Part shown: positions 410 through 47,402 of the stretch, in pieces | How positions within the stretch are numbered: the first letter of the stretch is position 1 | Layout of the letters: the number at the start of each line of letters is the position of its first letter | Assembly (NCBI RefSeq): GCF_006345805.1 | Contig: NW_021832127.1 | Coordinates: forward strand, 177,891-241,890 | Source: Octopus sinensis | Taxonomy: Eukaryota | DNA length: 64,000 nt | Direction: 5' to 3' | The notes under the pieces: generated by a model | What the model was told of the DNA's origin: nothing | The model's database searches: none | The model's input: only the letters and a program-made list of their open reading frames with translations | Translations under genes and position numbers: made by a program

Positions 410-991
410 TGTCACCGTTCGCTGAATGGACCACGCCGTTGAGTGGACCAAAGGCAGCTTTGGTCGATTTGCGTCCGAATCAGTTTTTGAAATCAACCGA
501 TCTCCCTCAATTATCGCATCTTTGTCGTATTTTCACTTTCGTCTCTTTATCACTTTGTCCGCTTTTACAAGAATGTTGTCATAAGCAACTTTTCGCGCAT
601 TTAAAATTTCCTCTTGCTCTTCATATCCAAGCAAATCATTTCGGTATTTTTCTGGAATGTCTTTAAGGTTTTTCTGGCCCATGAACAAATAAAAAGGAAT
701 CTTCTTAGTTGTCTCATGAACAGTGGAGTTGTAATCAAATACAATGTCTTTAAGAATTACGTCCGAATTTATCACGTGACCCACTTGCAGAATAAATCCA
801 TCTTTTAATCGATTGATTAAATCTATTTCTTTAACGATAACTTTTAAACCTTTCAACTTGGCCCTGGATCCATGGAGCACTTGCTCTGCCGAAAACATGT
901 TTTATTGAATACTTTTCGCATAATTCATCCATAGCGGTATTCTTAAATTCCTCCCCATTGTCCGTGTGCAAAATGACCGGAGGCCCTAATA
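410..991 (-). mobile_element. Ginger-like rve-integrase element, 3' part, interrupted by a Buster hAT
   Basis: Minus strand reads ILHTDNGEEF...FGRASAPWIQGQVE/RFNQSIKRW (D-35-E spacing) then YNSTVHETTKKIPFYLF. 27-nt intron at 823-849 and one further frameshift. Ends in a TGTCAC terminus at 410. Confidence 0.75.
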
Positions 992-3150
992 CAGTGGTTC
1001 TCAAACTTTTTTTCCTTGCGTACCCCTTGCCATCTAAATAATTTTTCGCGTACCCCTTATCGATTTTTAAAAAATTAAGGAAAAAAAAATTTAATTAATG
1101 AGATGGATGGTGTTGTTTATCAATCACTAATCTATCGATTTCTGGATCCTTTGACGAAAGACACACCCGAATATCATGAACAACATTCAGCCTCGCACGA
1201 TGAACTGATTTTAAATTAAACAACGATGAAAATCCTTGTTCGCAGAGATATGTAGTCGGAAACAAAAGCAAAAAATCGATTATATAAAATCCAATATTGT
1301 GATATTTTGATGTCATTTTACACCAAAATTCAATTAATGGTGCAGATTCAAATAAGATTTTTGACTCGTAAGAATTTATTAATTCAATAACTTCTTCTTG
1401 AATATTTGAAGGCAAAACATTAACTTTTACGGAAAAAGGATTGACAAAAAACTTAAGATCTACTTCATTAATTTCAGGTATATATTTTTCAATTTCATTC
1501 TTCAATCCAAGTAAATGGGAAGTTATTTGATGTTTTAAATTTTCTATTTCATTTAATTTTAGATGGAAAATGTTTTCATTCAACTTATCAAACATAGTAA
1601 AATTAGAATTTGTTGTATTATCTATCCACAGTTGGAGCTTCATACGAAAAGACCTACAATATTGCATTATTTCGTAAAAAACCTTGTTTTTTCTAAAAAG
1701 TCAACAATGGTAACTCCCTTAGTTTGTACCGATAAATTCAAAGCATTAATTCGCGAAAAAATGTCCGTTAAATAAGATAGCATTACACCCCAATACATAT
1801 TTGATAACTTTGATAAATATAAATTTTTATTTTCGCGAAGAAAATATTCATAAATTTCATTCTTCAAACTGTGCACTCTGGAAAGAACATTTCCTTTGGA
1901 TAACCATCGAACTTCTGTGTGATATAGTAAAACCTTCTCATCTGAACCAAATTCTTCACAAATTGAATAAAAAATTCGCGAATTTAAAGGACTTTTTTTG
2001 ATATGATTGACAATTTTAATAACATCGTCAAGAACATTTTTAAGTTCAAGAGGCATTGTCTTCACAGCAAGAACATAACGATGCAACATACAGTGAAGAT
2101 GTTTTACATTTGGATTGACAGATTGTACTCTACCTCGGAAACCAGAGTTACATCCAAGCATAGCTGGTGCTCCATCTGTGGTGCATGCACTAAGATTTTG
2201 CCAAAAAGGCCTATCATAAGTAAAAAATCAAAAATGTACCTTCTGTTTCAAAAAAACAATTAACTGCATCGAAAATATCAGAACCTTTTGTGTTTAAAGG
2301 TAAGGAATAGTTGAACAAAAATTCTTCCTTAATATTTTCCATATAAATATATCGCACATAAACGAGTAACTGAGAGCAATTTGCTACATCTGTTGATTCA
2401 TCCAATTGAATTGAAAATTTTTTAAAGGCAGCACTTTTTATTTCAGTAATGACCTAATAATAATTAACCAGAAAATAACTTGTTCTTTTATGTTTTCGGA
2501 TAGATCTCGTATTCTTCTATTGACGGTATCATTTGAACATGGAATTTTTCGAACAATATGCTCCAATTTATTGCCAGGGAAACATTCAAACATGTCCTTA
2601 ATGCACGGTATAATAAGATTCTCGGCAATTGTATGTGGTTTTTTGGCTTTTGCGATCCGATATGAAATCATGTAAGAGAGTTTTGATAGTAAAAAATTAA
2701 TGTCAAAATTGAAAGAATCGTCTATTTTCCGAATATTATCTTTTTTGTTCTTAAAAAAGTCATTTGTTTTCCGATAGTTTCGAAATGATTAGAAACTTGA
2801 TGCCGAGAAAGTAATGAAGGTTTCATGGATTCAGGGCAAAGAATCTTTTGGCAAATAATACACTGCGGATGTGGCACACCGTTTTTAATCACAAAATAAA
2901 ATCCATAGTTGAGATAACTATCGTTGTATTTTCGAATCTTGTTAACAGGTAAACTCATAAGAAAAACTAGTAGCGTGGAGATTTTTTTATTATTAATTAT
3001 TAATTTAATTATGATTTTTATTATAATTAGAATTAATAACTTTTTTATGTTGAAACGAAAATTAAATAGATTTTCAAAAAATTTTCGCGTACCCCCTACA
3101 GAATTTCGCGTACCCCTAGGGGTACGCGTACCCCAGTTTGAGAACCACTG
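992..3150 (-). mobile_element. hAT (Buster-type) transposon with an intron-containing transposase (2958..1095)
   Basis: 16-bp TIR CAGTGGTTCTCAAACT; perfect 8-bp TSD cccTAata (984-991, 3151-3158). BED finger CIIC..HQVSNH, QLDESTD, TDGAPAM, HTEVRWLS, YLCEQGFS. Introns at 2454-2479, 2211-2239, 1654-1682. Two 1-nt homopolymer deletions remain. Confidence 0.95.
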
Positions 3151-3337
3151 CCCTAATAGAACACTTATTGGAATGGACTTACCAATATATAGGGTTTTCG
3201 GATCAATATAATAATTTTTCGAATCAATATAATAATTTTTAAATTCAAAGAATTTTTAAATTCAAAGAAATTCAAAGAAAAAAAGATCAAAAAGAGTAAA
3301 TTATCGTTATTCTTGAATCACTTCAGAATTTGAGCAT

Positions 3338-4450
3338 TTATTCAAATACGTTAACATCTTTCTGTAGATGTAATTGAACATTGCATTGTGAAACTCCTCT
3401 TAGTTTTTTAAATGGTGTTTCATTTATAGAAGAATGAATAGTCGTGTTATATGTAAAAGTGCATCGTTTAATAAATTGGATCCAGTTTTTAGTTGATTCT
3501 TCACTCATCAGCTTTGAAAGATTTCGTGTTAAAGTTTGATTAAATCTTTCCACGGTACCCTGAAACAGATAAATATTGTGTCATTATTTGTGATTGAGGA
3601 TGATTTGGTCTTCCGTAAATATGTTGGATTTTGTTTTTCGTGCAAAAAGAATCGAGATATTTATTCCTAAACTCAGTTCCATTATCTGTTTGTAGAATCT
3701 CGCAAAAGCCGATTTCTGAACAAATTTCTTCGAAAGCCTCAAAAATATCTAAATTCCAATATAAAACATAAATATACTTATTGCAGATTTATTTTTAACT
3801 CCTTTACAAATGGCATACTTACTGTAAACATAAATGACGGTAAATATCCATTTGTATCCATCGTTCGAATCGTTAAATTTTTTAACGTCTATAAGGTCTG
3901 CTTGGAATCGTTCATTTGGTTTTTTGGCAATCACATGGTACTTAGATTCTGAAACCTGCTATATAAGTTTTTTATTTTATACTTTAAGTGGAATGGAAAA
4001 CTTGCATATTGAGCACTCTTTGACGACTCGTTCGATAATTTTACGCATTATTGTGAAATAGGAGTGTAAACATTCCTGTTGCAGTTTACGAATTCCAGAA
4101 TGGCTATTCCGGTGAATAGAATCTGCAATAGTTTGCATCTCACTCTCATTATCCATGCAAATAACTAGTTTGTGCTTTTGAAATCTTTCGTCTTTGAGGT
4201 ATAAGCAGTCATCAATGACAATAAATTTAGTGGATTTTTTAGTTAATTTATATTTTATTTGTCTTGAAGATGTCTGTACAGGTTGGCCATTTAAAATATT
4301 GACTATAGTATGATATTCTGAGATATTTTTTGCAAAACCTATTATTACATATACAGGGGAAAACATTTTAAAGAGGACATGTTGAAAATTGAATAATAAC
4401 GCTAAAAATATTAAATATACCCACACGAGTAACGAATGATTAAACCACAT
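3338..4450 (-). mobile_element. Ginger-like rve integrase gene (HHCC + DD35E); continuous ORF after splicing
   Basis: HRNSH..CSIC zinc motif, QADL, TDNG, VERFN. Removing 3959-3982 (24 nt), 3749-3777 (29 nt) and 3560-3587 (28 nt, AT donor) gives one frame of about 343 codons. Start codon and termini uncertain. Confidence 0.85.
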
Positions 4451-5399
4451 TAATTATGACATCTGACAGCCAATGACCTCGTAAAAATGATTGATTGACA
4501 GGTGACTTGTAGCCAGCATGGGATGCGTAACCACCATGGTACGCGACATAATAATATCAAGTTCAGGTAAAAATAATATCAATAAAATTCCATCATACTT
4601 TTGACAGACGGGGAAGTCTGGATGAGATTAAATACCTACCATAGACTGCATTAATACCATTTAAATTTCAATTCTTTAAAATCAATTTTTATTAAAATAA
4701 ATATTCGAGTCCGTGTTTCAACTTTATAGGTGATAATAAGTTTTCAAAAGTTAGGGGCTCCCCATTTTTGAAAAATCTCTCCAGTACAAAGCCCTTGGAG
4801 AATACACTCAACAGGAGCTTTGCGATATCACAACCACACCCAGTACGGGATTTTCCGTACTATGAGCTCTGACTTGATAGTCATTTTGAAAAGATCAAAA
4901 GTCTTCCTCCCTGTTGAATAATAACTCATTAAGTCTCCGAGATATCTGTGCTTTGCAAGCAGTTTGTGAGCCACAGATTGCATTTGCAACTTCGATGACA
5001 TCCAACGACATTTTGGATTTATTTAACAAAACTTAAGTGGTTTCTTTAATTGAATTCATATGCTCCATTTATTTTATTCAAACAACTACTCCAATAAAAC
5101 GATTACGCTATTGAGGATAGAATTTCTAACTTTATCCAATGGAAATTTGATTTTTCAATAAATTATACTGACTAATATTAAATTATATTTTTATACATAT
5201 AATATTTTCAAAGAGGCACATGGTTTTAGTAATTCGTGTTGTGCATGTATAGAATATCATTTACTTTTGTATTTGATTGCCAACAGCATGCTAAATTATT
5301 ATTGGTTTCTTGATGATTCCATTGACATAATCTTAAAAACTCTTGATCTATTTAAATATTACAGCTAGGTAGTCGAAGGGATTGTGAGGTAGTCAAGGA

Positions 5400-5620
5400 G
5401 CAGGCACAAATCAACAAATGTCTCGCAAGAGCTCACAGAAACTTACTAAGACTTAAGTTGTTTACGTGGTTTATCAAATTTGTTGCAACTGTGATAGACA
5501 GGTGGAACGTGCATCTACATTACAACAAATGCGATATAGGAGAGGTCAAGCTAGAGAGGGGCATCAAGGAGACAGTATGTCTACGCTGGTGTTTGTCCTG
5601 GTAATCTAGCAAAAAGCAGT
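5400..5620 (+). mobile_element. decayed RLE-type (R4/Dong-like) reverse transcriptase fragment
   Basis: RWNVHLHYNKCDIGEVKLERGI-QGDSMSTLVFVL matches the RT GILQGDSLSPLLF region; frameshifted. Confidence 0.6.
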
Positions 5621-6719: not shown

Positions 6720-7500
6720 GTACACTTTATGACAAAATTTTCACTCACTACCCACATAATACGGTTCAATGGTGTGTATTGTCAAAGTTTTATTATCGGT
6801 TATAACATATTTAATTAAGTATATGGTAAAGATGGCGTATATTATGACATTGGACGGGTCTTTGATAAATCCAGACATAAATTCTTGGTATTCTTTTGGT
6901 TTGTTGATTTACCATAGACAATTAGTTCGTAGTAAAGTCATTTTTGACGAAATTTGGTTTTGGATGTCTCTGGTTATTTTTCAATCGTGGGTTAAGAAAG
7001 CATTTTGAATAGATATTTCCCCCAATGACTCAAAAACCCGAATCATTTTCACAGGAACAGTCAATTGATATTCTACGTTTATTTTTATTTCAAAAATTGC
7101 CTCGACGATAAGCTGTCCGTGGAGGTACACCATGGCGGAAACAGAGTACTTAATGTAGGCCAACTAATTTGTTTGATCACTCGACGGGCTATATCAAGAC
7201 TGAGACGTTTCCTCAATAGATGTGTCAGATCACAACCACACAACTCTATCATAACAGTTGTTGGCGTTCTACTAGGACTTATATTTTCAATTGTAAGTCA
7301 AAGTCGTGGAGTTTGATAATATTGACGTGGCTTAGAGTGTTATTTAGGATGGTTATCCAGTTGACTATGTTGTCAGAGATGGTGACGTATATTTTCTTCC
7401 GCGATATTAGTTTAACTGCGACTTTTTATTCTAAGGAAACAATTTTATTGGATCATTTCATAAAATCAACGTCAAATGAACTGGAGATAATCTATCGGGC
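6720..7500 (-). pseudogene. decayed Ser/Thr protein kinase (CAMK/ULK-like N-lobe to subdomain VI)
   Basis: KVAVKLISRKKI...ILNNTLSHVNIIKLHDF...MIELCGCDLTHLLRKRLSLDIARRVIKQI...SAMVYLHGQLIV. In-frame stops, frameshifts and intron-like ~28-nt gaps with damaged splice sites. Confidence 0.6.
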
Positions 7501-7956
7501 AATTCATATCTCCTAATATAACAACTGAATCGTCTCCGAACCTAAAATATCTTAGGCAATGCAAATAAAGGCTGTCTCCACCAATATACTCCAAATTTTT
7601 AAGAAACTCAAGAGTTTGTAATTCATTGGGAACGGAAAAGAGGATGAATCCAGACACTGCCTGGACCCAACTTAAATATTTCAGGTTCTCGATTCGAATA
7701 GTTCTATTTATAGTAATTTGCAATCATTACTCTTTAGGCATTATGTAAAGACTCCCGATTACGACAGAACAACGCTCAAATTGTTTGATGTTCGAATTGG
7801 TGATCGCAATTTTATCATCCACGATTTCACAAACTATTTTTTTGTAAATAAAGACATTTCTAAACTATAAGAGTTGTTGAAAAGGTTCATTTTTATTGCG
7901 AGTCCGTCCATTAATACTTCCCGTTGTTCACATTCCAACTCATTTTCACAATCGTG
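7501..7956 (-). pseudogene. partial genomic duplicate of the Receptor-L-domain gene
   Basis: Near-identical to 14929-15381 (about 11 substitutions plus small indels by manual count). Keeps introns 2 and 3; lacks the start and the 3' end. Confidence 0.9.
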
Positions 7957-8085
7957 CTTTATTTTGTTTGAAGTTTTTTTTAGAAATTCGCATTTAGAAT
8001 GCTTTTGGATCAATTGAAAATTATTGTCGTGCTCATTAAAAATATGCCTGGTTAAAAATATAGATCGATCGATAGAAAATTGATG
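7957..8085. repeat. dispersed ~125-bp repeat, inverted copy at about 14268-14385
   Basis: attttctatcgat..tttttaaccaggc.tatttttaatgagcacgaca.. occurs in both places in opposite orientation, with moderate divergence. Confidence 0.7.
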
Positions 8086-12690: not shown

Positions 12691-12696
12691 ATTGTA

Positions 12697-14695: not shown

Positions 14696-15593
14696 TTAAC
14701 GAAACCAAAAGAGATAGTTAAATGGGTTCATTAAATGGAAAAGGTAACCCAGTGGAAAAAGAAACCCCAGCTTAAAAAAAGGCCTGCATTTTAATTTAAA
14801 ATCTTTGTTATCAAGTTTGTACGCTTTCTTCAAGTAATAGAATTGCGTACAGTAGACTGTCGGCAAATTGATAAACAGGCCGCCTTTAATCACCTCAAAT
14901 TGTTTAAATCCCAATTTTTTTATTTTCGAATTCATAACTCCTAATATAACAACTGAATCGCCTCCGAACCTAAAATATCTTAGACAATGCAAATACAGGC
15001 TGTCTCCGCCAATATACTCCAAATTTTTAAGAAACTCAAGAGTTTGTAATTCATTCGGAACGGAAAAGAGGATGAATCCAGTCACTGCCTGGACCCAACT
15101 TAAATATTTCAGGTTCTCGATTCGAATAGTTCTATTTATAGTAATTTGCAATCATTACTCTTTAGGCATTATGTAAAGACTCCCGATTACGACAGAACAA
15201 CGCTCAAATTGTTTGATGTTCGAATTGGTGATCGCAATTTTATCATCCACGATTTCACAAACTATTTTTTGTAAAAAGACATTTCTAAACTATAAGAGTT
15301 GTTGAAAAGGTTCATTTTTATTGCGAGTCCACCCATTAATACTTCCCGTTGTCCACATTCCGACTCATTTTCACAATCGTGAATTATTTGTTCTGTGAAA
15401 ATGGTTGTGATCAAAAAACTTTTAGCAAGTGTAGCGCCACATGGATATTCTGTGAACCTAACTCGCTCTTCCCCAGAATCCAGCGTGAATCTTCTTGTTT
15501 TAAAACATTCTATGTATAAATAATAAGTAAATTTCCACCTTGTGAATTGACAATAAAAACCAGTGAGCTTACAATCGCTAAATAACCAAGCAT
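14696..15593 (-). CDS. secreted or surface single Receptor-L-domain protein, 270 aa, 4 exons (15593-15539, 15509-15291, 15261-15159, 15131-14696)
   Basis: The spliced frame is uninterrupted. Signal-like MLGYLAIVSSLVFIVNSQ; L-domain pattern CSVVIGSLYI..LKYLSWVQAVTGFILF..LQTLEFLKNLEYIGGDSLY; hydrophobic C-tail. GT-AG introns of 29, 29 and 27 nt. The 3' exon structure is less certain. Confidence 0.85.
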
Positions 15594-18540: not shown

Positions 18541-20587
18541 TGGGGTTATCCCCACTAAACTAATTCCAAATAAAGATATTGTGTGAACTAAGATATTATT
18601 TATTAAAATATACTTTGGGAAAGTCCTCCTGTGATTTGGTCTTTTTGCGCTGCATGTTTTATAGGATCGTTGGCTAATTTAATCGCCTCATTTTTCGTTA
18701 TCGATACTCTAGGGCAGGGGTGGCCAACCTTTTTCACCGGCGAGCTACTTTTCATTTTGCGATTTTTTGGAGATCGACTTATATATTTTAATATCAAAAA
18801 TTTTATTTTACAATTAAAAATTAATGCGATTTTTGGCATTGTAATTCACTTGCGATTATTTCAAATTCTGGCTCGTATAAGCTTATTGCTATTCTCATGC
18901 AATCCCCAAGATGGTCATCCGTTAAACGTGTCCTGTATTGAGATTTTATCATTTTCATACTTGAAAATGATGTTTCGGATAAATATGTGCTTCCAAAGCA
19001 TGAAAGAATTCGTTGATACGAATCAACCAAAATTGGATATTTTTCCTGAGACATAAATTTCCACATGTTGACATTTGAATTAATTTTAAAGTGATGTCAT
19101 TTTTTAGATTTATAATTTCTATTTGACTTTTTCTTCGATCAACGTCAAAAATCTTGCTAAATTCTTCTGAAATATTTTCGATGTCTACATCCATGAACGA
19201 GGAGAAACAAAGAAACTGCATAATATAGTAATTTTCTTGAAATCGCTAAATCTGTATTAAACTCGTTCATTATTTTTTCTAGTACCATAGCAAATTCATT
19301 GACATAATGATTTTTATTCACAAGTTGTTTTGTGAATTCATCTTCAATGTTAGGAAAATGGGTAAAATTTTCTTTTCTGATTTGAGATATCCATAATTCC
19401 AACTTCATTATGAAAGCATTTATTGAACTGATCATATCGATAATATATCTATTCTTTACCTGTAATTCTAAATTGAGTTCATTCAGTTTGCTGGTAATAT
19501 CGGTTAGCCAAACAGGATTTTCAAGAAAATGCCAATTCTTGTTGTTTTTTTAGAAAATTCTTTAATGTATGATAATAATTCTCTGAAACGACTGAGAATT
19601 AATCCCTTGCTTAACCATCTTATGTCACAATGTAAAGGTAGATCGCCATAGATTGCATCGACTTGTTCTAGAAAAAGTCGAAATAATCTTCTTTGTAGGG
19701 GCTTGGCTCGGATGGAATTAATAATTTTAACTGTTGTCTCCATAACATAGTTGAAATTTAACATTTTCCCACATAATGCATGTTGGTGAATGATGCAATG
19801 ATATGATAAAAATTTCGGAAAATGTTTATCTTTCCGACAAAATGCAATAAATCCATTTTGATTCCCAATCATTGCAGGGGCTCCATCTGTTGTTATGGAT
19901 ACAAGTTTCTTCATTAACGGTAATAATTCGAATGATAACAAAAACGTTTTGAAAGAATATAAATATTTTCACCAGTTGTTCTTTCTTTCATAGGTATAAT
20001 AGCAAATAACTCTTCCTTGACAGTTAGATCATGGAAGATTAAACGGGAAAATACACATAGTTGGGCGATATCAATAGCATCGTTTGATTCGTCAAACTGT
20101 AGAGAAAAACACGAACATGCGTAAAGATCCTTTTTTAACTGCGAAAGAAGATTTTCAGAAATGCTTTCAGCCCTTCTGACCAGTGTTCCCTCTAAGCGAG
20201 TGGTAGCTATGCGCGCTGGGCACATTGCATTGTGCAGCGTTATAAAGTGACGTGTGCAAAAAATTTTTTGGGGGGGGGAAATTTTACAATTAAAAAACAA
20301 TGGTTAAAAAAATAGGTCTAGTCAATTGGATATTCTCTTCTGTTTTTATTTTGTATCCAAATTTGTATACTCGGTCAAGATCCACTGTATTCCCACTTGT
20401 TAAATAGAACTTGATTCGCATGATCATCTCCAAATGGTCAATCTCAAGTCTATTACGTAGTTTAGTTTTGATACAGTTCATCAACTAAATCCACGTTCAG
20501 CATCAGCACTCGACGCTTGAAATGTGCCACAAATATCCACAAATGTTGCAGTGGCTGAAAATTTTTTCTCCGCGAGTATATAGTAAA

Positions 20588-22647
20588 CTAGCTCGGCAGC
20601 TCGCTTCGCTCACCGCGACGTAGCTCCTGCGGAGGGCCTGTTTCATCAAACAACTATAAGTTTATGTAGATGTATAAAACTACCTGGTTTAATGTAACCC
20701 TATTCTATCGCCTGTTGATAAACGATGTTTGTCGTCCGTCCTTCCTTGGCATATATGAATAAATTTTCTCTTCTGCCTACCCTCGAGCATCCCACATACA
20801 GCTGTCCATGTGAAAAGCACTCACTCTCTAAAAATAACCCAACTACCTTTAATGACTGTCCCTGGGCCTTGTTTATTGTCATTGCACACTTTTTTTTTCA
20901 TTTTTTGTGGTTTATTTTTTTTATATTAATTTTTTCATTTTTCCTTTGTAATTTCCTTTTTTTTCTTTTTTGTTTTTTACTGGCGGAAATGGGGCAGGGG
21001 AGATGCGGCAGGCGGAAATGCGGCAGGCAAGAAAGCGACACACAAAAAAGCGACACACAAAAAAGATTTAATTAATTACCTTATTAAGCTGACCGTTTTT
21101 TCTTCAGCCTCGTTTTTCCTCCTTCGGTTATCTATTTAAAAAATTATTTTTGAATAATAAAAAAGTTTAGGAAAAGAGGCATACCGAAAATAAATTCTAT
21201 CTTTACAAAAAACTCAAGTAAATAGTTAATATTTACGCAAATTCTTCTGATTGCGCTGTCAATTGGTGGTAAATTGTGTTAATGGTTGTGCTAATGTGGT
21301 TTCAACTATCAAAGTGTTTTTCAAAATCTGTTAATTGCACACTCTATTCAAGGTCGTGCGTCAATTGGTGGTAAATTGTGTTAATGATTGTGCTAATGTG
21401 GTTTCAACTATCAAAGTGGTTTTTCAAAATCTGTTAATTGCACACTCTATTCAAAGTCGTGCAATCTGTGATTGCACATTCTGTCAAAGTCAAATATGAT
21501 AATAGCTTTAATTTTGATTCATGGTCGATAATGATATATGCATTTAATTTTAAAGAGAAAAACATAGGATGAATTGAATTTTTTATCGCGAATAATTGGG
21601 AGTTCATCATTGTTAATATTCTCGCTGTCGTTTTCATCAAGGATATTCTTAATACGTGAGATTTTTGCCTTGAAGGTTTTAATGGACCTCATCATGAATG
21701 TCGAGGACATTCGCGTTGTTCATTTTAATCAAAATGCAGAAAATATTTTTGATTTTTTGGGGGAAAGGTTTTAAGGACTTCATCATGTGAGTCGAGGACA
21801 TTGTAGTTGTTCATTTTAATCAAAATGCAGAAAATAATTTTTTGATTTTTTGGGGGAAAGGTTTTAAGGACTTCATCATGTAAGTTGAGGACATTGTAGT
21901 TGTTCATTTTAACCAAAATGCAGAAAATTTTTTTTTAATTTTTTTTGGGGGGAAGGTTTTAAGGACTTCATCATGTAAGTTGAGGACATTGTAGTTGTTC
22001 ATTTTAACCAAAATGCAGAAAATTTTTTTTAATTTTTTTGGGGGGGAAGGTTTTAAGGACTTCATCATGTAAGTCGAGGACGTTGTAGTTGTTCATTTTA
22101 ACCAAAATGCAGAAAATTTTTTTTAATTTTTTTGGGGGGGGAAGGTTTTAAGGACTTCATCATGTAAGTCGAGGACATCGTAGTTGTTCATTTTAACCAA
22201 AATGCAGAAAATTTTTTTTTAATTTTTTTGGGGGGGAAGGTTTTAAGGACCTCATCATGTAAGTCGAGGACATCGTAGTTATTCATTTTAACCAAAATGC
22301 AGAAAATTTTTTTTTAATTTTTTTGGGGGGGAAGGTTTTTAGGACCTCATCATGTAAGTCGAGGACATCGTAGTTGTTCATTTTAACCAAAATGCAGAAA
22401 ATTTTTTTTAATTTTTTTTGGGGGGGAAGGTTTTAAGGACCTCATCATGTAAGTCGAGGACATCGTAGTTGTTCATTTTGACCAAAACGCAGAAAAATTT
22501 TTTTTAATTTTTTTTGGGGGGGAAGGTTTTAAGGACCTCATCATGTAAGTCGAGGACATCGTATTGCCAATTTGAAGTTGGTGTGCACACACAGACAGAC
22601 AGACACACAGACAGACAGACACACACCATACCATTTTATTATTAAGA
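20588..22647 (-). mobile_element. non-autonomous Helitron, copy A
   Basis: 5' TC at 22647; 3' GC-rich hairpin-like stretch and CTAG|T at 20588. PIF1 helicase tail TINKAQGQSL..FSHGQLYVGCSRV; no TSD. Confidence 0.92.
21700..22560. repeat. ~95-bp tandem array inside Helitron A
   Basis: About 9-10 units of gaaggttttaaggacttcatcatgtaagtcgaggacat.gtagttgttcattttaaccaaaatgcagaaaa(T)n aa(T)n(G)n. Confidence 0.95.
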
Positions 22648-24463: not shown

Positions 24464-24849
24464 CAAAGTGTTTTTCAAAATCAGTTAATTGCACACTCTA
24501 TTCAAGGTCGTGCGTCAATTGGTGGTAAATTGTGTTAATGATTGTGCTAATGTGGTTTTAACTATCAAAGTGGTTTTTCAAAATCTGTTAATTGCACACT
24601 CTATTCAAAGTCGTGCAATCTGTGATTGCACATTCTGTCAAAGTCAAATATGATAATAGCTTTAATTTTGATTCATGGTCGATAATGATATATGCATTTA
24701 ATTTTAAAGAGAAAAACATAGGATGAATTGAATTTCTTTATCGCGAATAATTGGGAGTTCATCATTGTTAATATTCTCGCTGTCGTTTTCATCAAGGATA
24801 TTCTTAATACGTGAGATTTTTGCCTTGAAGGTTTTAATGGACCTCATCA

Positions 24850-25910
24850 TAAATGTCGAGGACATTCGCGTTGTTCATTTTAATCAAAATGCAGAAAATA
24901 ATTTTTTGATTTTTTGGGGGGAAGGTTTTAAGGACTTCATCATGTAAGTCGAGGACATTGTAGTTGTTCATTTTAACCAAAATGCAGAAAATTTTTTTTT
25001 AATTTTTTTGGGGGGAAGGTTTTAAGGACTTCATCATGTAAGTTGAGGACATTGTAGTTGTTCATTTTAACCAAAATGCAGAAAATTTTTTTTTAATTTT
25101 TTTGGGGGGGAAGGTTTTAAGGACTTCATCATGTAAGTCGAGGACATTGTAGTTGTTCATTTTAACCAAAATGCAGAAAATTTTTTTTAAATTTTTTTTG
25201 GGGGGAAGGTTTTAAGGACTTCATCATGTAAGTCGAGGACATTGTAGTTGTTCATTTTAACCAAAATGCAGAAATTTTTTTTAAATTTTTTTTGGGGGGA
25301 AGGTTTTAAGGACTTCATCATGTAAGTCGAGGACATTGTAGTTGTTCATTTTAACCAAAATGCAGAAATTTTTTTTTAATTTTTTTGGGGGGAAGGTTTT
25401 AAGGACTTCATCATGTAAGTCGAGGACATTGTAGTTGTTCATTTTAACCAAAATGCAGAAAATTTTTTTTTAATTTTTTTTGGGGGGAAGGTTTTAAGGA
25501 CTTCATCATGTAAGTCGAGGACATCGTAGTTGTTCATTTTAACCAAAATGCAGAAAATTTTTTTTAAATTTTTTTTGGGGGGGAAGGTTTTAAGGACTTC
25601 ATCATGTAAGTCGAGGACATTGTAGTTGTTCATTTTAACCAAAATGCAGAAAATTTTTTTTTAATTTTTTTGGGGGGAAGGTTTTAAGGACTTCATCATG
25701 TAAGTCGAGGACATTGTAGTTGTTCATTTTAACCAAAATGCAGAAAATTTTTTTTTAATTTTTTTGGGGGGGAAGGTTTTAAGGACTTCATCATGTAAGT
25801 CGAGGACATTGTAGTTGTTCATTTTAACCAAAATGCAGAAATTTTTTTTTTAATTTTTTTGGGGGGAAGGTTTTAAGGACCTCATCATGTAAGTCGAGGA
25901 CATCGTATTG
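24850..25910. repeat. ~95-bp tandem array inside Helitron B
   Basis: About 11-12 units of the same monomer as 21700-22560. Confidence 0.95.
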
Positions 25911-29243: not shown

Positions 29244-30487
29244 CAGAGGTTTCCAAATGGGGAGGCGCGCCTCCCTAGGGAGGCGTTGACTCGTGTCAAG
29301 GGAGGCGCGAAAAGTATTTCAGAAACATTTTTTAGAAAATTATATCTATGTAAAAAACGTGACTATATTCCGATAATAAAGTTATTAATTTAAAAATTAT
29401 ATTTTTCAAAAATTTATTTAATTTATTAGACAATTAAATAATTTTAACACATGAATAAATTCTTGAGTGGTTGCAAAAGAAAATTCACGAATAATAAAGA
29501 TTTTGACGATGGTTCAAAAAATCAAAATGATTGGAATATAATCAATACCACTCCAAAGACAAGAAAATACTTTCCATCTTACTTATTGTTAGGATTCACA
29601 CGTATCTTTGTTGATTCTATGGAAAAACCCCTCTGTTTGCTTTGCCTCAAAACACTTGCAGCAGATAGTATGAGGCCATGCAAATTAAGAAGACATTTTG
29701 AAACGATGCATTCTGAACATGTCCATAAGTCTGAAGAATTTTTTAAAAGAAAATTAGAAGAGTTTGATAACCAAACGAAATCGTATTATGGAAATCAAAT
29801 AAAAGCATTTATGAAAAAATTGGTATTATGGAAATCAAATATACAAAAAAATATCTATGACATGTTTCCACTTTTAAAACACTTTTGCGCCATAGTGAAC
29901 ATTGAAGCAAACAAAGACATATTTGCTGAACATTTGGATTGTTTGTTGAAGCATTTTGCTCACTATTTTAAAGATCTCGACTGTAAAATGTTCGAATGGA
30001 TACAGAATCCATTTATTGATGAAGAAGATAATCAATTTGCATTGACAACTTTTGAAAAAGAAAAATTGATAGAATTGTCATGCGATACATTATTGAAACA
30101 AAAATTTGAGAGAGAACCGCTAATTTCTTTTTGGTTGAATGTAAGAACGGAATATGAAATTTTGTCGAATAAAGCAATGAAAGTTTTGTTGCCATTTGCT
30201 ACTTCATATTTATGCGAAACTGGATTTTCTGCACTAGCTGCAATTAAATCTAAATATCGAACTCGTTTAGTAGTGACTAATGAGCTAAGAGTAGCACTCT
30301 CTGCGATGACACCAAGATTTGAAAAACTTTGCGCCAAGATGGAAAAAAAATTATCTCATTAACTTTTTGTTTTAAAAAATTGTTTTTGATAAAAATAAAT
30401 TGTATTATATTATGGAATATAAAGGGAGGCGCAAGATTGTACTTTTTCTCTAAGGGAGGCGCGTAAAAAAAAGCTTGGAAACCTCTG
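29244..30487 (+). mobile_element. internally deleted Buster hAT with an open 303-aa ORF (29451..30362)
   Basis: 13-bp TIR CAGAGGTTTCCAA; TSD aacTAac(c). About 99% identical to 35409-37601 but lacks the catalytic middle. Confidence 0.93.
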
Positions 30488-35408: not shown

Positions 35409-37601
35409 CAGAGGTTTCCAAATGGGGAGGCGCGCCTCCTAGGGAGGCGTTGACTCGTGTCAAGGGAGGCGCGAAAAGTATTTCAGAAACATTTTTTAGA
35501 AAATTATATCTATGTAAAAAACGTGACTATATTCCGATAATAAGAGTTATTAATTTAAAAATTATATTTTTTCAAAAATTTATTTAATTTATTAGACAAT
35601 TAAATAATTTTAACACATGAATAAATTCTTGAGTGGTTGCAAAAGAAAATTCACGAATAATAAAGATTTTGACGATGGTTCAAAAAATCAAAATGATTGG
35701 AATATAATCAATACCACTCCAAAGACAAGAAAATACTTTCCATCTTACTTATTGTTAGGATTCACACGTATCTTTGTTGATTCTATGGAAAAACCCCTCT
35801 GTTTGCTTTGCCTCAAAACACTTGCAGCAGATAGTATGAGGCCATGCAAATTAAGAAGACATTTTGAAACGATGCATTCTGAACATGTCCATAAGTCTGA
35901 AGAATTTTTTAAAAGAAAATTAGAAGAGTTTGATAACCAAACGAAATCGTTAAAAAAACTTGTTTCTGTCTCTTCAAATGCTTTACTAGCATCGTACAAA
36001 GTTTCTTACAGGATTGCAAAATGCAAGAAACCGCACAATATCGGAGAAACTCTAGTTTTGCCAGCAGCTATCGATATGGTTGAAGCAATGTTTGGCGAAT
36101 CCTATGCAAAACAATTACAGCAAATACCGCTTGCTGATAACACAGTCGCTAGAAGAATTGATGACATATCTGAAGATCTTTGTGATCAGTTGGTTTCTCG
36201 ACTACGTAACTGTAAATTGCTATACAAGTTGATGAGGGAGCTGACATAAATAAAAATGCACATTTAATTGCATATGTCAGATATGCTGAAGAAAGTACAA
36301 TAATAGAAGATCTATTATTCTGCAAACCATTTCCTGGAAGGAGCACGGCCAATGAAATTTTTAATATAATGATACTTTTTTTGAAGAAAATAACATAGAA
36401 TGGATCAATTGTGTTGGACTTTGTACAGACGGAGCACAGTCAATGTCAGGAAATAAATCTGGTCTTCAAGCTCTTGTAAAAAACAGAGCACCAGAAATTA
36501 TCTGGACGCACTGCATGCTGCACAGATCAGCACTTGTCTCAAAGAATATGAGTCCAGAACTGAACGATATTTTTGCGCAAATTACAAAAGTTATAAACTA
36601 CATAAAACACAGTCCTTTAAGAGCTAAGCTTTTTGCAAAGCTGTGTGAAGATATGGATTCAAAATATACATCGCTTTTATACTATTGTGAGGTACGCTGG
36701 CTATCTCGTGCAAAAGTGATTAGAAGGGTGTTTGAACTCAAAGATCAAGTTGCAGATTTTCTTGATGAAAATGATATTGAAGATGCAAAGTTGTTCAGGG
36801 ATGATGACTTTATTGTCAAATTTGCCTATTTAGTTGACATTTTTGGGAAATTGAGTATATTGAATAAATCAATGCAGGGACCACAACTACATTTATTCTC
36901 TCAAAAGGACAAAATAAAAGCATTTATGAAAAAATTGGTATTATGGAAATCAAATATACAAAAAAATATCTATGACATGTTTCCACTTTTAAACACCTTT
37001 TGCGCCATAGTGAACATTGAAGCAAACAAAGACATATTTGCTGAACATTTGGATTGTTTGTTGAAGCATTTTGCTCACTATTTTAAAGATCTCGACTGTA
37101 AAATGTTCGAATGGATACAGAATCCATTTATTGATGAAGGAGATAATCAATTTGCATTGACAACTTTTGAAAAAGAAAAATTGATAGAATTGTCATGCGA
37201 TACATTATTGAAACAAAAATTTGAGAGAGAACCGCTAATTTCTTTTTGGTTGAATGTAAAAACGGAATATGAAATTTTGTCGAATAAAGCAATGAAAGTT
37301 TTGTTGCCATTTGCTACTTCATATTTATGCGAAACTGGATTTTCTGCACTAGCTGCAATTAATCTAAATATCGAACTCGTTTAGTAGTGACTAATGAGCT
37401 AAGAGTAGCACTCTCTGCGATGACACCAAGATTTGAAAAACTTTGCGCCAAGATGGAAAAAAAATTATCTCATTAACTTTTTGTTTTAAAAATTGTTTTT
37501 GATAAAATAATAATTGTATTATATTATGGAATATAAAGGGAGGCGCAAGATTGTACTTTTTCTCTAAGGGAGGCGCGTAAAAAAAAGCTTGGAAACCTCT
37601 G
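35409..37601 (+). mobile_element. full-length Buster hAT, intronless, 1-nt frameshifts (transposase 35617..~37435)
   Basis: TIR CAGAGGTTTCCAA; perfect TSD caaTAgat. CLLC..HFETMH, QVDEG, TDGAQSM, CEVRWLS, YLCETGFS. Confidence 0.95.
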
Positions 37602-38340: not shown

Positions 38341-38344
38341 AGAC

Positions 38345-40499: not shown

Positions 40500-43138
40500 T
40501 TTTTTTCAAAAGGCCAATTTGAAATATATGGAAAGTTAAATTAATCAGAAATTAATCGGCCAGCAAGCCGGATGGAACAGCTGTTCCCACGCACAACGGC
40601 CAACAGGATCCTTTGGATTAGGAATGTAAATTCCCTAGGATCTTTGGAGCGTAATGAACAGAGGTGGCCAAGTTTCTTCAGATGATCAATAGTCTTTGTG
40701 CCAAAGACGCACGAAGTCTCAACAACAATTGGCCAAAACCAAAAGCCGTCTAACAAGCCCTGGTATTTTTCGGATTTTGTATATTCAGCCCTATTAGCAC
40801 GGGACCCGGGCAGAGAGGCGGATTCGTTGATGGCCGACTTAGAGAAGGAATCAACACACGTGGCATCCCAAACTAGTGGTTTACCAGCGTCGAAAGCGAA
40901 CAACGTCGAGCCATCAGGCCTTTTTCCGTCACCACGGTCAAGACCAATTGGCTCAAGGACAGAAGGATACCCTGCCTTTTCGAGGGCATGGAGAATGATC
41001 TTGTTAAGAGCCGAATGACGAGGTATGCGACCTGCGCTTTTCTTGCAGGAAAGGGCATGGAGCCCGTATGTGTCCATCGTTGATCCACACCGGCAGGGGT
41101 GGGGATTACAAATCGGTAGTCCGAGACGAAGGCATATTCCAAAACGGAGGGCATCAGAGTCGAGGCAGGTATCCAAATGGGTCGTGGGAAGGCAGTTAAG
41201 CCAGGAGCCAGAATACGGTTGGCGACTGGCACGGAAGCAAGCTAGTCTGTGCTGGTCCAAGAGACGCTCCAACGAGTCAACGTAATATTCACAAATAATT
41301 TTGTCCCATTCACGTTGGAGAGATCGTTCTGACGGTAAGACGAAATCCTTTTCCTTCCAAAGCAAGAGTGCAGAATTGATATCAGAGTCCAAAGTTGATT
41401 CGGGTGATTTTTCAAGAATCTTATGGACAAGAAGATACAATCCTGAAGAAGATGAAAGGAAAGCGGGAAGAGAAAGGTCGAGCGCGGAGCGAAGCCCCAG
41501 ACCGCCAAAGGATACAGGAAGTTTGGCCTGACACCAACTAACGTCATCAAACTTGACATTAAAAATCTTCTCAGCGGAAGAACGCACCAGAGCGTCGAAA
41601 GAATCCAAGGCAATAGGAATAGAAAAGCAGCGGGAACTCCTTAGGACATAATTGATTTTCGGGATCAGAAGATAATTTTTGAGAATGAAATAAGCAGGGT
41701 GGGGATCAATATCTGCAAGTTTATCACAAAGGGAAGAAAGGGCATTCCTCTTGGAATTAAGAATACGAATGGCGGATTGGTCGTAGATCGGAGCACCCAA
41801 GATTTCGAGATCGGCAGTGGAAGTATGTCTCAGATCGGGCAAAAGGCCTCGAAACTGAGAAAAAATGTTTTGAAAACTAACACGATCGATGTTAACATTT
41901 ACGATTTCAGATTTGAGAGAATTAATTTCGAGACCAATGGATGACAAAGCTGGGATTAGAGATTCCAAGTCCTTTAACAAAATATCGGGCGGACCACCAA
42001 TAGTACAATCATCCAAATACCAAATATTCAGTGGCGACAAATTCTTGCGGGCAATAAAATCCACGGAAAGGGCAAATAATAACGGGCCCAAAGGATCGCC
42101 TTGCTGTACACCACAAGAGGAGGAAATAAAGGAATCACCTGCAGCCAAAAGGCTCGGGTATCCATATGAAAGAAAAACAAATGGCAGCAATGAAGGAATT
42201 CTGTCTTTACAAGCCTCAAGTAGATGCCCTCTATTGAGAGAATTGAACGCATTTTTAACATCCAATTTTAGCAGTAGCCGGGGCTTTTCAGAGAGGTGAG
42301 ACGAATCAATAAAACACCGGGATGCGTGGACCGCGGCCTCGCAGCCGCCAGGCACGCCAACGCCCAACTGAATGGGCTGGAGTTCGTCACTAATAGACGG
42401 AATTACCAGTTTGCACCTGACTTTTGCAAACAAACGGCGGAAAACATTTCCGACGGCAATAGGCCTAATGCCGCCGTCTTTTTTCTCCAAAGCTGTCAGG
42501 TTCGCAGAGAAGAAAAGCAGTCTAGCATGTTCAGATATATCCCCGCAGAGGAATAAGTTACATAGCTTGGTGATAGAATGTGAAAGACAGTTTCCGGCCT
42601 CGGCAGTATCGGAAATGAGGTCGATTAAGTGAATGGGACGGAGACCGTCAACACCACCACTACTATTGCCTCTGAAAGATTTCAAGGCAAACAAAAGTTG
42701 CTGGACAGACGAAGAAGCAATCGAGACCCCCTCTGGAGTTTGGGGACAAAAATTAGGCACATTGCCAGTCGGGTGCTTAGAGCTGAGAATTTTGACTACA
42801 TCCGGAGTAATGGTGCGGACGGAATCGGAAGATGAAAGAATGCGGACCGCAGAACCGACGTCGTGCGCCATTAAGCAGGAGTTGATACGTTTGCGTAACC
42901 GAATGGGGTTGTTTTTGGAAATGGATGAAGTTGTTTTATTAAACTTGCCCGTAAGAGAAGGCAGAATGAAAGATTCTTTCATGAACTTATTTATATTTTC
43001 TTTGATGGAAGAGGAAAGGGATTTGTTCGAGCATGAACCTTGAACTGGGGAAGTGAGGGCAAATACTGCAAAGCAGAACAGTTGTGCAAAAACAGAGATT
43101 AACATTATCTGAGATAAAATAACAAATTTCATCCTCAA
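40500..43138 (-). mobile_element. CRE-like RLE non-LTR retrotransposon, 5'-truncated, uninterrupted 865-codon ORF (RT + CCHC + RLE)
   Basis: GIRPIAVG, LDVKNAFN, GVQQGDPLGP, WYLDD, CRCG..HALSC, KRPDG..WDATC..EKY; A-rich tail near 40490-40510. Confidence 0.93.
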
Positions 43139-43199
43139 ATGTTAACATTTTTGCAAGAAATCTGATTCTCTATATTTTTTGGCGTAATTTCGCTTTTAT

Positions 43200-43400: not shown

Positions 43401-43684
43401 TGTCAAGGTCTACGGCTGTGCAAGTAAAAATAGAATGTTCTTGGTAATTAAATTGAATTGATTTTCAAAATGATCGGCTATTAGTTCGGTTTGAACAGTG
43501 GGGTCATAAATAATTTTTCCCGTGTCATCGATGAGTTGGAGTTTGCTGTGTTTGCTTCTTTTAAGTAGTCATATGCCCCAAGAATATAATCGATTTGGTG
43601 AGTCATAAGTAGGGTAGCAACAAAGTTGACCTAACAAAATCAAAAATTGATCTCCATGAAGTCAACAAAATCATTTTTATTTTT

Positions 43685-44495
43685 GATGATATAAAATGTC
43701 AATTCCAGAAAAATGTTAACTGAGGTCAATAAGGAGAAGAACTGATGGCGATCCTGTTTCCCCTCACTATTTTGTTGACTTTTTTGATGATATAAAATGT
43801 CAATTCCAGAAAAATGTTAACTAAGATCAATAAGAAGAACTGATGGCGATCCTGTTTCCCCTCACTATTGCTTGGGACACGTTCTGGAGGAGCCATCTCG
43901 TCTCCAGAGGATTGTGTGTTCTCAAGGTCTTGAGACGTCCAATACACTTGAGGAAGCACAACGACTCCTTCCAAATAGATCCCAGGGTTTCGACAGCAAC
44001 CGGCCGGAAAACGTAACGATTGGTGAGCCCATCATATTTCTTCTTCTTGATGTCCTCTGCTTTATCCGCAGCTGTGCCGGCATTGCAGGCACTTTCCAAC
44101 ATTTTTGTCTTGGACAAGGAGTCGGAACATGTTGAATCCCATACGAGAGGCTTTCCCTCCAAAAACGGAAAGATAGTCATCCCGTCTGGGCGTTTTCCAT
44201 CTCCTCGGTCCAATCCAGGTGGTTCCAGCACTGATGGGAATCCGATTGAATCGAGAGCTCTTCTTATAACGTCGTTGAGAGCTGAATGCCTCGGGAATCT
44301 ACCAGCGCTTTTTCGACAGGAAAGAGGGTGAAGTCCAAATTGATCAATCGATGCACCACAGCGGCATTTGTGTGGTTCACAAACTTTGAGACCGATACGT
44401 AGACAGATACCAACTCGCAGTGTGTCAGAATCCAAGAGAGTCCCCAAGCTTCCGATCGGGAAGGCTTCCAAAAAAGAGGAAAGTTCACCAAAATG
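43685..44495 (-). mobile_element. 5'-truncated CRE-like element with a tandem duplicate of its last ~85 bp
   Basis: CRCG..HPLSC, KRPDG, WDSTC, AVETLG. 43685-43770 repeats 43786-43870. Confidence 0.85.
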
Positions 44496-44569
44496 TAGAC
44501 CTAAAAAGAAGTTTTTCAGACAATTTTTAGGCAATAATTTTTTCTAGAAACATGAATTATATAGAATCA

Positions 44570-44800
44570 CATAATATTTAACGTTTTTAGTTTCAAAATT
44601 CCGGTCTTTGTTCAATTTTTTTACGAACTGAAAACGAGCGCTCTACGGAACACGTAGTTGCCTGACACTGGAGTAAATGAAACTTTTTCAAATGCAAAAA
44701 AATTCCATCTCCGTTAATAATTTTACAAATTTCATTCGTGTTCAATCTCTTCTCGATGTATTCATTTATTTTACATGCATCTTCTTTTAAATCGATTTCT
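44570..44800 (-). mobile_element. hAT-like transposase C-terminal remnant
   Basis: QATTCSVERSFS..KDRNFETKNVKY. Confidence 0.5.
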
Positions 44801-45079
44801 CAGAAAATTGTAAGCATTTTGGATAGAAAAGTTCCCTGACTCAATTTCACTAAGAACATCGACGAATGAGGGTAATCAAAATTTATTGGGAAATTCTTGG
44901 ATAATTCTCGAGGCCATTGCTTATCCCGAGGACTTCTCGTCTTTTCGCAATCAGTTGCCCATTCTATTCTACAAAAAAAGAATTCTGATAAAGTAAACCC
45001 ATGAGATTATTTCGAATCGTCCATACGGATTGATAACCGAGGAAAAGAATCCATTCTGCCCTCTCTGGGTGGTCTAAGA

Positions 45080-47402
45080 CAGGGGTCGGCAAAAGCAGGC
45101 TCGCGAGCCTTTGAAGGCTCTTTAACTCTTACGGTAGGCTCTTTCAATTTTTAACTATTTTTTTTGTTTTGTTAATAACAAAAAATCTTTGCACGTTTAA
45201 CATTTATTTTTTGTGGTACATCGATTTATGCCTAGCAATAAAAAAATTAATTAAAACATCGATATATCGCGACATATTCAATCAAAATGAACTGAAACTT
45301 TTTCATTCACGTCTAATTCAGAACAACTACCGAAATGTCTCATTTGCCAGGAAACTTTGAATCAAAATAAAAAGTCAAATTTAAAGAGACACTTTAATAC
45401 AAAACACTCAAATTTCGCAAAAAAATATCCAATTGGTGATTCCCGAAAGAAAGCTGTAGAAGAACTTGCAAAGAATAATCAGATTGAGAATTCCGCTTTT
45501 AAATATTGGTATCATAATGCCAGGACTGCAAATATTGCCAGTTTTTTGATAAACCACGAGATCGCAAAAAGGGGAAACCATTTACCGATGGCGAATTTAT
45601 AAAGGCATGTTTCATTAAAACCTCTGAAGAACTTTTTCACGATTTTTCAAATAAGGCAGAAATCGTGAATAAGATAATGAATATACCTTTATCTGCGAAA
45701 ATAGTAGCCGACAGGACTTTTAAGATGTCTTCGAATGTATCTGTTTAACAAGTTTCTGACATGAAATTGTCTAATTCAATTTCAATAGCAATAGATGAAT
45801 CATGTGATATAAATGACATTTCACAAGTATCATTGTTCATGTCATACTTAGGTGTCTCTGTCTGTTCGTTATGTGTTTCGAGGTTTCCTGAGGCAAGAAC
45901 TTTTGGCATTATTGCCTCTAAAGGGTCAAACCCGTGGTGAAGATCTTGTTGGCGCAGTCGTAGAATATTTTGAAACAAATTATATTCCTCTTAATAAAAT
46001 CGTTTCAATTTCAACTGACGGTGCTGCAAGCATGCTGGGATCGAGAAAGGGATTTATAACTTTAATTAAAAGGAGAATTGATCATGAAGTGATTACTCTA
46101 CATTGTATTATCCACCAAGAAGTACTACCTGCGCAAACATTTCCGAAGGAAATTTTAGAAGTGATGGAATTGGTCATAAAGATTACTAACTTCATTATAT
46201 CAAGAGTAATATATTATTTATTATATATTTAAGGGACTTGATCATCGGCTATTTAAAGAGTTGTTAAACGAAACCAACAACGAGTATATTGATCTACTTC
46301 AATACAACAAAGTTCGCTGGCTTTCGAGAGGGAACGTTTTCAATCGGTTTGCTTCTTGTATGGAAGAAGTCAAACTTTTTTTAAATGAGAAAAAAATTCA
46401 TTATGACGAATTAAGTGATGACCAATGGCTGCAGAAATTCTATTTTATGGTTGACATAACATCAGAATTAAACAAACTTAATTCAAAATTGCAAAGGAGT
46501 GGAAATATTGCATTTTTCATGTATGAGGAAGTGATATTATTAGAAAAAAAATTAATTCTGTTTGAAGAGGATATAGAACAAAATATTTTACATTTTCCTA
46601 AATTACGCCAATATTTGAAAGAAAATGATCGAACTATAAATAAAACTTATTTTAAAAATGCTCTTTTGTATATGAAGGAATCTTTCAATGACAGGTTAAA
46701 AATGAATGTTTAAATATAAAAAGGTTTAAGGATTTTAGAAAAGAAAAAGCAACACTATCGTTCGTTATAAACCCTCTACGTGCTAAAGTCAGCAATTTAA
46801 ATTTATTGCCATTTGAGATCAACGCAGCTGAGTTCGAAATGCAGCTATTGGACTTGACATGTAAGGAACTATGGGCATCAAAATTTATTCGCCTTTCAGA
46901 ATTACTTGAAACAGAAACATTGTCTGGTAAAATTAAAAATGATATTAATGTTATACAAAAGAAACCTGAAGATGTGATTTTCGAAACTTGGAATTCTCTT
47001 CCAGATTCTTATTATGAATTAAAAAAATTTGCATACGGAATTTTGACAATATTCGGGTCCACATGTGTGAACAAAGTTTTTCTCATATAAATTATATATA
47101 TAATCGAAATTAAGGAACAAAATTACAGATTCGAATTTGGAATCTAACCTCAGATTAAAATTAACGACTTACGACCCAGACATTAGCCAACTCTCCAAAG
47201 AAATGAGGAATCACATTTCTCATTAATGCGTCTAATTAATTTAATTTTTTAAAATGAATTCTTAATTATTTTTTAAATTAATGTCTATTTAATTGTATGA
47301 ATTTAAATTTTTGACAAGTGGTAAAAGGTGGCTCTTCAATTTTTCGAAATTTCCAAAAATGTTCAAAATTGGCTCTTCTCCAAAAGTATTTGCCGACCCC
47401 TG
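45080..47402 (+). mobile_element. hAT (SPIN/GTF2IRD2-like) transposon, decayed, with two tiny introns
   Basis: 14-bp TIR CAGGGGTCGGCAAA; perfect TSD gtcTAaga. AIDES, TDGAASM, KVRWLS. Introns at 46206-46233 and 46695-46723; also true stops and frameshifts. Confidence 0.93.

Follow-up and report, generated by a model that had tools for sequence, protein, structure and literature searches.

Apparent ultra-short introns in hAT-Buster transposase and integrase genes on an Octopus sinensis contig of most likely dicyemid origin

Introns in the genes of DNA transposons are well known, with the P element, Ac and Tol2 as examples. CACTA transposases are intron-bearing as well (PMC4158355). Animal introns of less than 30 nucleotides (nt) have been described from host genes, and in a 2026 survey of 51 animal genomes they were found only in myxobolid myxozoans and in Dicyema japonicum, in which GTa and AG are all that remains of the splice signals (PMC13644364). 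Recent intron gain is known from introners, multi-copy elements that become introns (PMC9860276, PMC12130899). Here we describe a stretch of DNA (referred to below as ‘the window’) deposited under the name of Octopus sinensis, in which ten insertions of 24-29 nt interrupt the transposase genes of two hAT-Buster families and two genes for retroviral-type integrases. The window is the terminal 64 kb (positions 177891-241890) of VCDQ01009226.1, a 241,890-bp unplaced contig of assembly GCA_006345805.1.

The insertions resemble the introns of the P element, Ac, Tol2 and CACTA in that they would be host-type introns copied together with a DNA element, whose splicing is needed for a transposase to be made, but they differ in being 24-29 nt long, under the usual animal minimum, and in lying in genes with single-exon relatives. 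With the introns of D. japonicum and the myxobolids they share a length below 30 nt, AT-richness, the presence of several in one gene, and splice signals cut down to GT followed by A or T on the 5’ side and to AG on the 3’ side (PMC13644364; PMC6736024); those introns were described in host genes, whereas the present ones lie in transposon genes. Like introners they point to recent intron gain, but they are unique sequences of 24-29 nt lodged inside transposons. Our literature search found no description of ultra-short introns in transposon genes. Each component is already known, and what we could not find described is a set of several ultra-short introns, independent of one another, in integrase genes and Buster-type hAT genes with intronless relatives.

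The insertions and the genes that carry them

The first-pass annotation of the window had listed nine AT-rich insertions, and all nine stood up to checking of their coordinates, lengths and ends (Table 1): eight run from GT to AG and one, 3560-3587, from AT to AG, and their AT content is 75-93%. A tenth was found in hAT-Buster family C. Boundaries were set solely by protein colinearity with homologues; a naive search for segments of 18-40 nt that run from GT to AG and join open frames had given 170 candidates, mostly false, and was replaced by these homologue-guided junctions. Nine of the ten segments start with GT, all ten end in AG, and all fall between 24 and 29 nt. With a composition of ~17% G and 33% A or T, each dinucleotide would be expected by chance at ~5-6%. 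These ends and the narrow size range are far beyond chance, and a chance origin is not credible.

Excision of each insertion gives a protein without a gap at the junction relative to intronless homologues (alignments A1, A3 and A4), while retention of any of them causes a frameshift or a premature stop; the two whose length is divisible by three both contain in-frame stops. The junction context is A/G or AG/G in eight of the ten. Where more than one copy was available, the position was kept across related copies, a comparison that covered two positions (intron 1 of hAT-Buster element A in two copies, and the integrase intron after ..PLK in three paralogues); the other eight positions are known from one copy each. 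We infer from these features that the ten segments are U2-type spliceosomal introns of the ultra-short class (<30 nt), which would be removed by splicing.

Table 1. Features of the window, with positions counted from its first nucleotide. A slash marks the junction in the predicted protein; A1 is the alignment of 15 hAT-Buster proteins.
Feature	Position	Strand	Description
hAT-Buster (SPIN-like) element A	992..3150	-	2159 bp; complete hAT, inserted in integrase fragment 2
hAT A intron 1	2454..2479	-	26 nt, GT-AG; ..KEQV/ITEIK..; gapless in A1
hAT A intron 2	2211..2239	-	29 nt, GT-AG; ..FFETEG/LFWQNL..
hAT A intron 3	1654..1682	-	29 nt, GT-AG; ..FLEKTR/SFRMKLQLW..
hAT-Buster family C coding region	45303..47223	+	~30% identical to family A
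hAT C intron (not in first-pass annotation)	45827..45851	+	25 nt, GT-AG; ..DINDISQ/VSLSVRYV..
hAT C intron	46206..46233	+	28 nt, GT-AG; ..NFIISR/GLDHRLF..
hAT C intron	46695..46723	+	29 nt, GT-AG; ..ESFNDR/FKDFRK..
Integrase gene 1	3338..4366	-	retroviral-type; H2C2 zinc finger and rve core
Integrase 1 intron 1	3959..3982	-	24 nt, GT-AG; after ..CKFSIPLK; in-frame stops inside
Integrase 1 intron 2	3749..3777	-	29 nt, GT-AG; ..NKSAI/NIFEAF..
Integrase 1 intron 3	3560..3587	-	28 nt, AT-AG; ..PQSQ/GTVERFNQ..
Integrase fragment 2	410..991	-	5’-truncated, frameshifted, split by hAT A; ~25 further bases at 3159-3185
Integrase 2 intron	823..849	-	27 nt, GT-AG; ..QGQVE/RFNQ..; in-frame TAA inside
Receptor L domain gene fragment	7480..8060	-	introns 7704-7730 (27 nt) and 7834-7865 (32 nt), GT-AG
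hAT-Buster copy D	18824..20303	-	decayed; frameshifts only, no tiny introns
hAT-Buster family F	35409..37601	+	two 1-nt frameshifts, no tiny introns
Non-LTR retrotransposon open reading frame	40544..43141	-	866 aa, uninterrupted; reverse transcriptase and C-terminal CCHC/PD-D/ExK-like endonuclease
Tc1/mariner transposase	48101..49060	+	single frame, one in-frame TGA after residue 203, no tiny intron

hAT-Buster element A has perfect terminal inverted repeats (TIRs) of 15 nt, CAGTGGTTCTCAAAC (the TIR search gave two matches against 0.12 expected), and an 8-bp target-site duplication (TSD), ccctaata, at 984-991 and 3151-3158. Removal of its three introns yields a protein of 593 amino acids (aa) that matches Buster/ZBED5-like proteins at 99% coverage (51% identity, best E 3e-193). 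In A1 there is no gap at any of the three junctions, and element A keeps every invariant column of that alignment, including the conserved acidic residues and the C-terminal ..TYLCEqGFS.. motif. Its homologues carry PF14291, PF27073, PF05699 and PF27046; the spliced protein itself had no match in our local copy of Pfam, so the family assignment rests on the homologues. With hAT-Buster/SPIN elements and their domesticated relatives (ZBED5, FAM200, SCAND3), element A shares the 8-bp TSD, a TIR of the CAGTGGTTCTCAA type and a transposase that is homologous and colinear along its full length, at 40-51% identity. The difference is that the known members and the database relatives are uninterrupted, whereas there are three introns in family A and three or more in family C.

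Intron 2 of element A had been singled out as the only insertion that needs an additional indel. It does need one, a single base restored in a T-run just downstream, where element A has a private 1-nt deletion, but a second private 1-nt deletion lies near 2775. That it is private is shown by another copy of family A, found in one of the ~20-kb stretches (L002-L006) that we fetched around each of five relatives of the non-LTR (long terminal repeat) retrotransposon open reading frame (ORF) in the window. This copy, at L005 7861-8728, is an 868-bp internal-deletion derivative, ~99% identical where the two overlap and flanked by an 8-bp TSD of its own, ATTTAGAG, and it carries intron 1 at the same site with one base less (25 nt). 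Since the two copies are ~99% identical, family A appears to be young and to have moved recently while carrying intron 1. At L005 8185-8568 the Gnomon model continues into the tiny intron and ends within it, which bears out the earlier expectation that ORF-based annotation miscalls such elements. In genomes of this kind it will label intron-bearing, possibly active, families as dead.

The family C copy is decayed: it has one nonsense codon and one frameshift, and a further frameshift affects the C-terminus. Excision of the two insertions known beforehand opens a 415-aa frame colinear with homologues, and excision of the newly found one restores the exact DES..Q....VRY motif spacing of the homologues.

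Integrase gene 1, directly upstream of integrase fragment 2 and element A on the same strand, becomes one uninterrupted, intact ORF of 315 aa once its three introns are removed. The spliced product matches rve (6.8e-13), rve_3 and Integrase_H2C2 in Pfam and is colinear with an intronless homologue. The AT start of intron 3 is probably a G>A mutation of the donor in this copy, because the boundaries cannot be slid. In integrase fragment 2, excision of 823-849 restores QVE/RFNQ, four codons from the site of intron 3 in gene 1. The site of intron 1, after ..PLK, is also occupied in paralogues in L004 (23 nt) and L003 (22 nt) at 44-51% protein identity; the three introns keep GT and AG and are otherwise unrelated in sequence. 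A further relative in the window, at 54593-55032 (35% identity), reads through this site without an intron. The recovery of conserved motifs on excision, noted before for the nine insertions, thus held throughout, with products of 593, 315 and 415 aa and the QVE/RFNQ junction.

The database protein nearest to integrase 1 (46% identity) is encoded in the microsporidian Dictyocoela muelleri (L009 227-1012) by a stand-alone gene with a single exon of 786 nt, annotated ‘Gag-Pol’. A search of 5.8 billion proteins found only five relatives, and an integrase lineage that is rare and common to two unrelated parasites may point to horizontal transfer. The first-pass annotation had placed these genes among Ginger-type DNA transposons. 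In agreement with this, the integrase is the only gene of its unit: the ATG is preceded by stops and no reverse transcriptase lies nearby, so that, as in Ginger, a stand-alone H2C2 and DDE retroviral-type integrase gene lies without adjacent gag or reverse transcriptase. In contrast to Ginger, the C-terminus is short, and a TIR search around integrase 1 (3152-5400) returned only weak AT-rich inverted repeats (74-76%), nothing convincing, and no TSD; the genes are at most putative members of Ginger. The intron carriers, described before as four unrelated transposons, are indeed four copies, but they belong to two superfamilies, as two hAT-Buster families and two integrase lineages.

Identity of the host genome

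The insertions had been attributed to a host genome with characteristic tiny introns. This attribution holds: the host is a tiny-intron animal. It is almost certainly an animal other than Octopus sinensis, and most likely a dicyemid mesozoan (Dicyema, a renal parasite of O. sinensis) whose contigs would be unplaced contaminants in GCA_006345805.1. This reading is based on the fit of the intron class, of housekeeping genes with tiny introns and of unplaced contigs to Dicyema.

Non-transposon genes with such introns were found both in the window and on related contigs. Five introns, of 24, 49, 27, 28 and 26 nt, interrupt an APN1/EndoIV-like gene at L005 15964-16999, whose spliced product covers positions 3-248 of 249 of PF01261 (E 8.8e-55); two, of 23 and 24 nt, interrupt RPP30 at L004 20548-21269 (PF01876, E 3.7e-35). 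The spans of the Gnomon models for these two genes imply that some tiny introns were accepted there. Two of the contigs that bear relatives of the window’s elements (those of L004 and L005) therefore hold housekeeping genes with introns of 23-28 nt. In the window itself, splicing of a receptor L domain gene fragment raises its PF01030 score from 20.9 to 33.3 bits (E 5.6e-8), and a paralogous piece at 14929-15392, 96% identical, has introns of 27 nt (15132-15158) and 29 nt. Together these non-transposon introns measure 23, 24, 24, 26, 27, 27, 28, 29/32 and 49 nt, compared with 24-29 nt in the transposons, so the match in size that had been claimed from host genes was borne out, with a range of 23-49 nt in the APN1-like, RPP30 and receptor L genes. 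The receptor L duplication comprises 468 bp (7501-7968), including the 27-nt intron, placed again 7.4 kb away at 96% identity; the second intron is 32 nt in one duplicate and 29 nt in the other, and the exons remain in frame.

Relatives of the transposable elements lead to the same set of contigs. The intact retrotransposon ORF has five named relatives at 48-82% identity, all of them ‘Octopus sinensis’ proteins. Seven relatives of the Tc1/mariner and non-LTR families could be located, all on contigs of 49-669 kb, and none of these located relatives lies on a chromosome-scale scaffold or in another octopus species. The window contig and the six other located contigs are all unplaced, although repeat-rich octopus contigs can be unplaced too. 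Octopus genes have long introns, and no octopus-type feature (tRNA-derived short interspersed element, tRNA or long-intron gene) was seen in the window. For comparison, chromosomes account for 86% of the O. sinensis assembly (PMC10700109). The kidney of O. sinensis is the habitat of D. japonicum, whose genome of 67.5 Mb has 36.7% GC and 49% repeats, and the authors of that genome noted that parasite cells were not fully separable from host cells (PMC6736024). A microsporidian origin, suggested by the best integrase match, was ruled out by the two to five introns per housekeeping gene and by the animal-type transposons and receptor L domain.

In the literature that we searched, no report of dicyemid contamination in the O. 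sinensis assembly was found. If there is contamination, the Gnomon entries ‘uncharacterized protein LOC... [Octopus sinensis]’ P0121, P0122, P0128, P0129, P0154, P0170 and P0173 would be mislabelled. The duplicated BUSCO score of O. sinensis, 5.2% as against 0.4-0.5% in other octopuses (PMC10700109), may partly reflect it. A RefSeq assembly that appears to hold contigs and gene models of another animal may mislead work on horizontal transfer, on transposons and on the gene content of cephalopods, and the dicyemid sequences apparent in this reference are the more consequential by-product of our analysis.

Intron gain and alternative explanations

Comparison with the closest homologues elsewhere, which had been proposed as a check on lineage-specific gain, found these relatives uninterrupted. 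The top hAT homologues are ORFs of 592-602 aa on contigs of 2-4 kb; P0001, for example, is a 598-aa ORF at 1008-2804 of a 3959-nt contig, and P0124, from a gene-dense Logan contig, was likewise checked and its ORF is uninterrupted. All six hAT intron positions differ between families A and C. Because the positions differ between the families and the closest homologues elsewhere have no introns, we conclude that the introns would be independent, family-specific gains made in this lineage; the ..PLK intron may be old enough to have had an earlier origin. Of the initial proposal that the genome inserts its tiny introns into resident transposons, the gains thus stood, but no specific process came to light: among 18 introns the best pairwise similarity score, 11, equals the maximum of shuffled controls, and similarity between introns and their flanks was no better than in such controls. 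An introner-type origin accordingly found no support, the intron sequences not being shared beyond chance, nor did a recent tandem-duplication origin, as the introns resemble the flanking exons no more than chance would give.

Taking these points jointly, we think it likely that the insertions are genuine ultra-short introns in genes of DNA elements, gained in a dicyemid host after the families diverged. The introns would have arisen after that divergence and, because transposition is DNA-based, would have been duplicated along with the element. The host spliceosome would then have to remove them before a functional transposase or integrase could form, because each retained intron gives a frameshift or a premature stop. 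It is an even question whether a lineage known for intron shrinkage also creates new ultra-short introns. If it does, ten or more gains in this window would be unambiguous, the ancestral state of the genes being intronless. With single-exon relatives giving that state, each intron would be a clean case of gain, and the lineage is one of just two among animals that have introns of <30 nt; a genome-wide survey could give the rate, site preference and mechanism of intron gain.

Several observations weigh against this explanation. Disabling mutations are present in all the intron-bearing copies but integrase 1, which has the AT donor; none of the copies seen is demonstrably functional. Integrase 1, with no TIRs detected, may be a host gene and not a transposon. 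The dicyemid identity is circumstantial, a strong inference as opposed to identity with Dicyema sequence, and near-identical ORFs from read sets of Dicyema were absent from the results of the hAT and integrase protein searches; a different species of dicyemid may be the contaminant, or the Dicyema data may not be indexed. Among the matches of those searches there was also no near-identical spliced protein for hAT A or the integrase.

Four other explanations have to be set beside it. It is extremely improbable that the segments are not introns but small chance insertions, filler DNA or eliminated sequences of the ciliate type within dead copies. Most of the copies are pseudogenes and the segments are AT-rich like the non-coding DNA around them, as such debris would be, but GT at nine and AG at ten of ten ends would then be left to chance, as would a narrow size range equal to that of the host introns and the filling of one site in diverged paralogues by segments with conserved ends and diverged sequence. 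There are also no TA..TA boundaries, and the exons follow the standard genetic code, with TAA as the stop and neither TAA nor TAG in frame; the GT..AG boundaries and the openness of the exons under that code, ending in TAA, rule out ciliate internal eliminated sequences. The integrases raise a more serious doubt. They could form an integrase-derived host gene family, with ordinary host-gene introns, which would leave only the hAT cases as transposon introns. The stand-alone, intact ORF of integrase 1 without convincing TIRs or TSD, the one intron position conserved among diverged paralogues and the mere five database relatives all suit a host gene; the paralogues, however, are decayed, truncated and surrounded by further repeats (hAT A divides integrase 2, and the copy in L003 contains a frameshift), and the donor site of integrase 1 itself is mutated. 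On balance we regard a host gene family as unlikely, if worth keeping in mind.

Rather less probable is that the transposon lineages already had the introns, which either were once longer and shrank along with the other introns of the host or were acquired in another tiny-intron host, and that these arrived with the elements. Elements of the hAT/SPIN type do transfer horizontally, the closest integrase homologue comes from another parasite, the microsporidian, and the ..PLK intron predates the 44-51% divergence of the paralogues and so is old. Yet the close hAT homologues are all uninterrupted and gapless across the six positions, which are not shared between families A and C; the microsporidian integrase has a single exon; and the relative at 54593-55032, in the same genome, has no ..PLK intron. 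Finally, the contig could be genuine octopus DNA into which the intron-bearing elements and the receptor L fragment were transferred from a dicyemid parasite. It was deposited as O. sinensis and passed RefSeq annotation, and the sole non-transposon sequence in the window is a duplicated gene fragment. Against transfer stand the lack of any octopus-type feature in the window, the confinement of every located relative to unplaced contigs, two of them with the housekeeping genes described above, and the consideration that an element that needs 25-nt introns removed could not express its transposase in an octopus. Contamination is far more likely, and we rate transfer into octopus as very improbable; were it true, parasite-sized introns would be a built-in mark of horizontal transfer from parasite to host.

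Other elements and sequences in the window

Carriage of tiny introns is not general among the elements present: hAT families F and E, copy D, a further hAT in L003, the Tc1/mariner transposase and the non-LTR retrotransposons are all without them. Intronless retrotransposon ORFs are expected because such elements copy through spliced RNA. The hAT called E (29244-30487) is a 99%-identical, internally deleted and non-autonomous derivative of family F, and because of this identity family F also appears to be young. The non-LTR family may still be active, as one copy has an intact ORF of 866 aa; further fragments lie at 23917-24474, 43830-44543, 51854-52213 and 60756-61253.

Mobile-element remains make up nearly all of the window, which is AT-rich (GC 29-42%). 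It contains at least five copies of hAT-Buster elements, two genes for retroviral-type integrases, several pieces of non-LTR retrotransposons and of Helitron helicases, two Tc1/mariner elements and a satellite of 94-95 nt. A Pfam scan of stop-free segments outside the elements gave almost exclusively transposon domains, plus the receptor L domain. A tRNA scan of the window found none, and Rfam gave no matches in the window or in the three loci searched with it. In an exact-match look-up of 22 ORFs from the window, the single match was the N-terminal ORF of the Tc1/mariner element, whose first 203 aa (the helix-turn-helix part) are identical to an NCBI-annotated protein of ‘Octopus sinensis’; this match placed the window at the end of VCDQ01009226.1. 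The satellite forms two arrays, at 21672-22563 (9.4 copies) and 24827-25907 (11.4 copies), with 94-96% matches, flanked by Helitron-type Pif1 helicase fragments on the minus strand (20703-20897, 22766-22951 and 23036-23311); the block from 20.6 to 22.6 kb is repeated entire at 22.6-25.9 kb.

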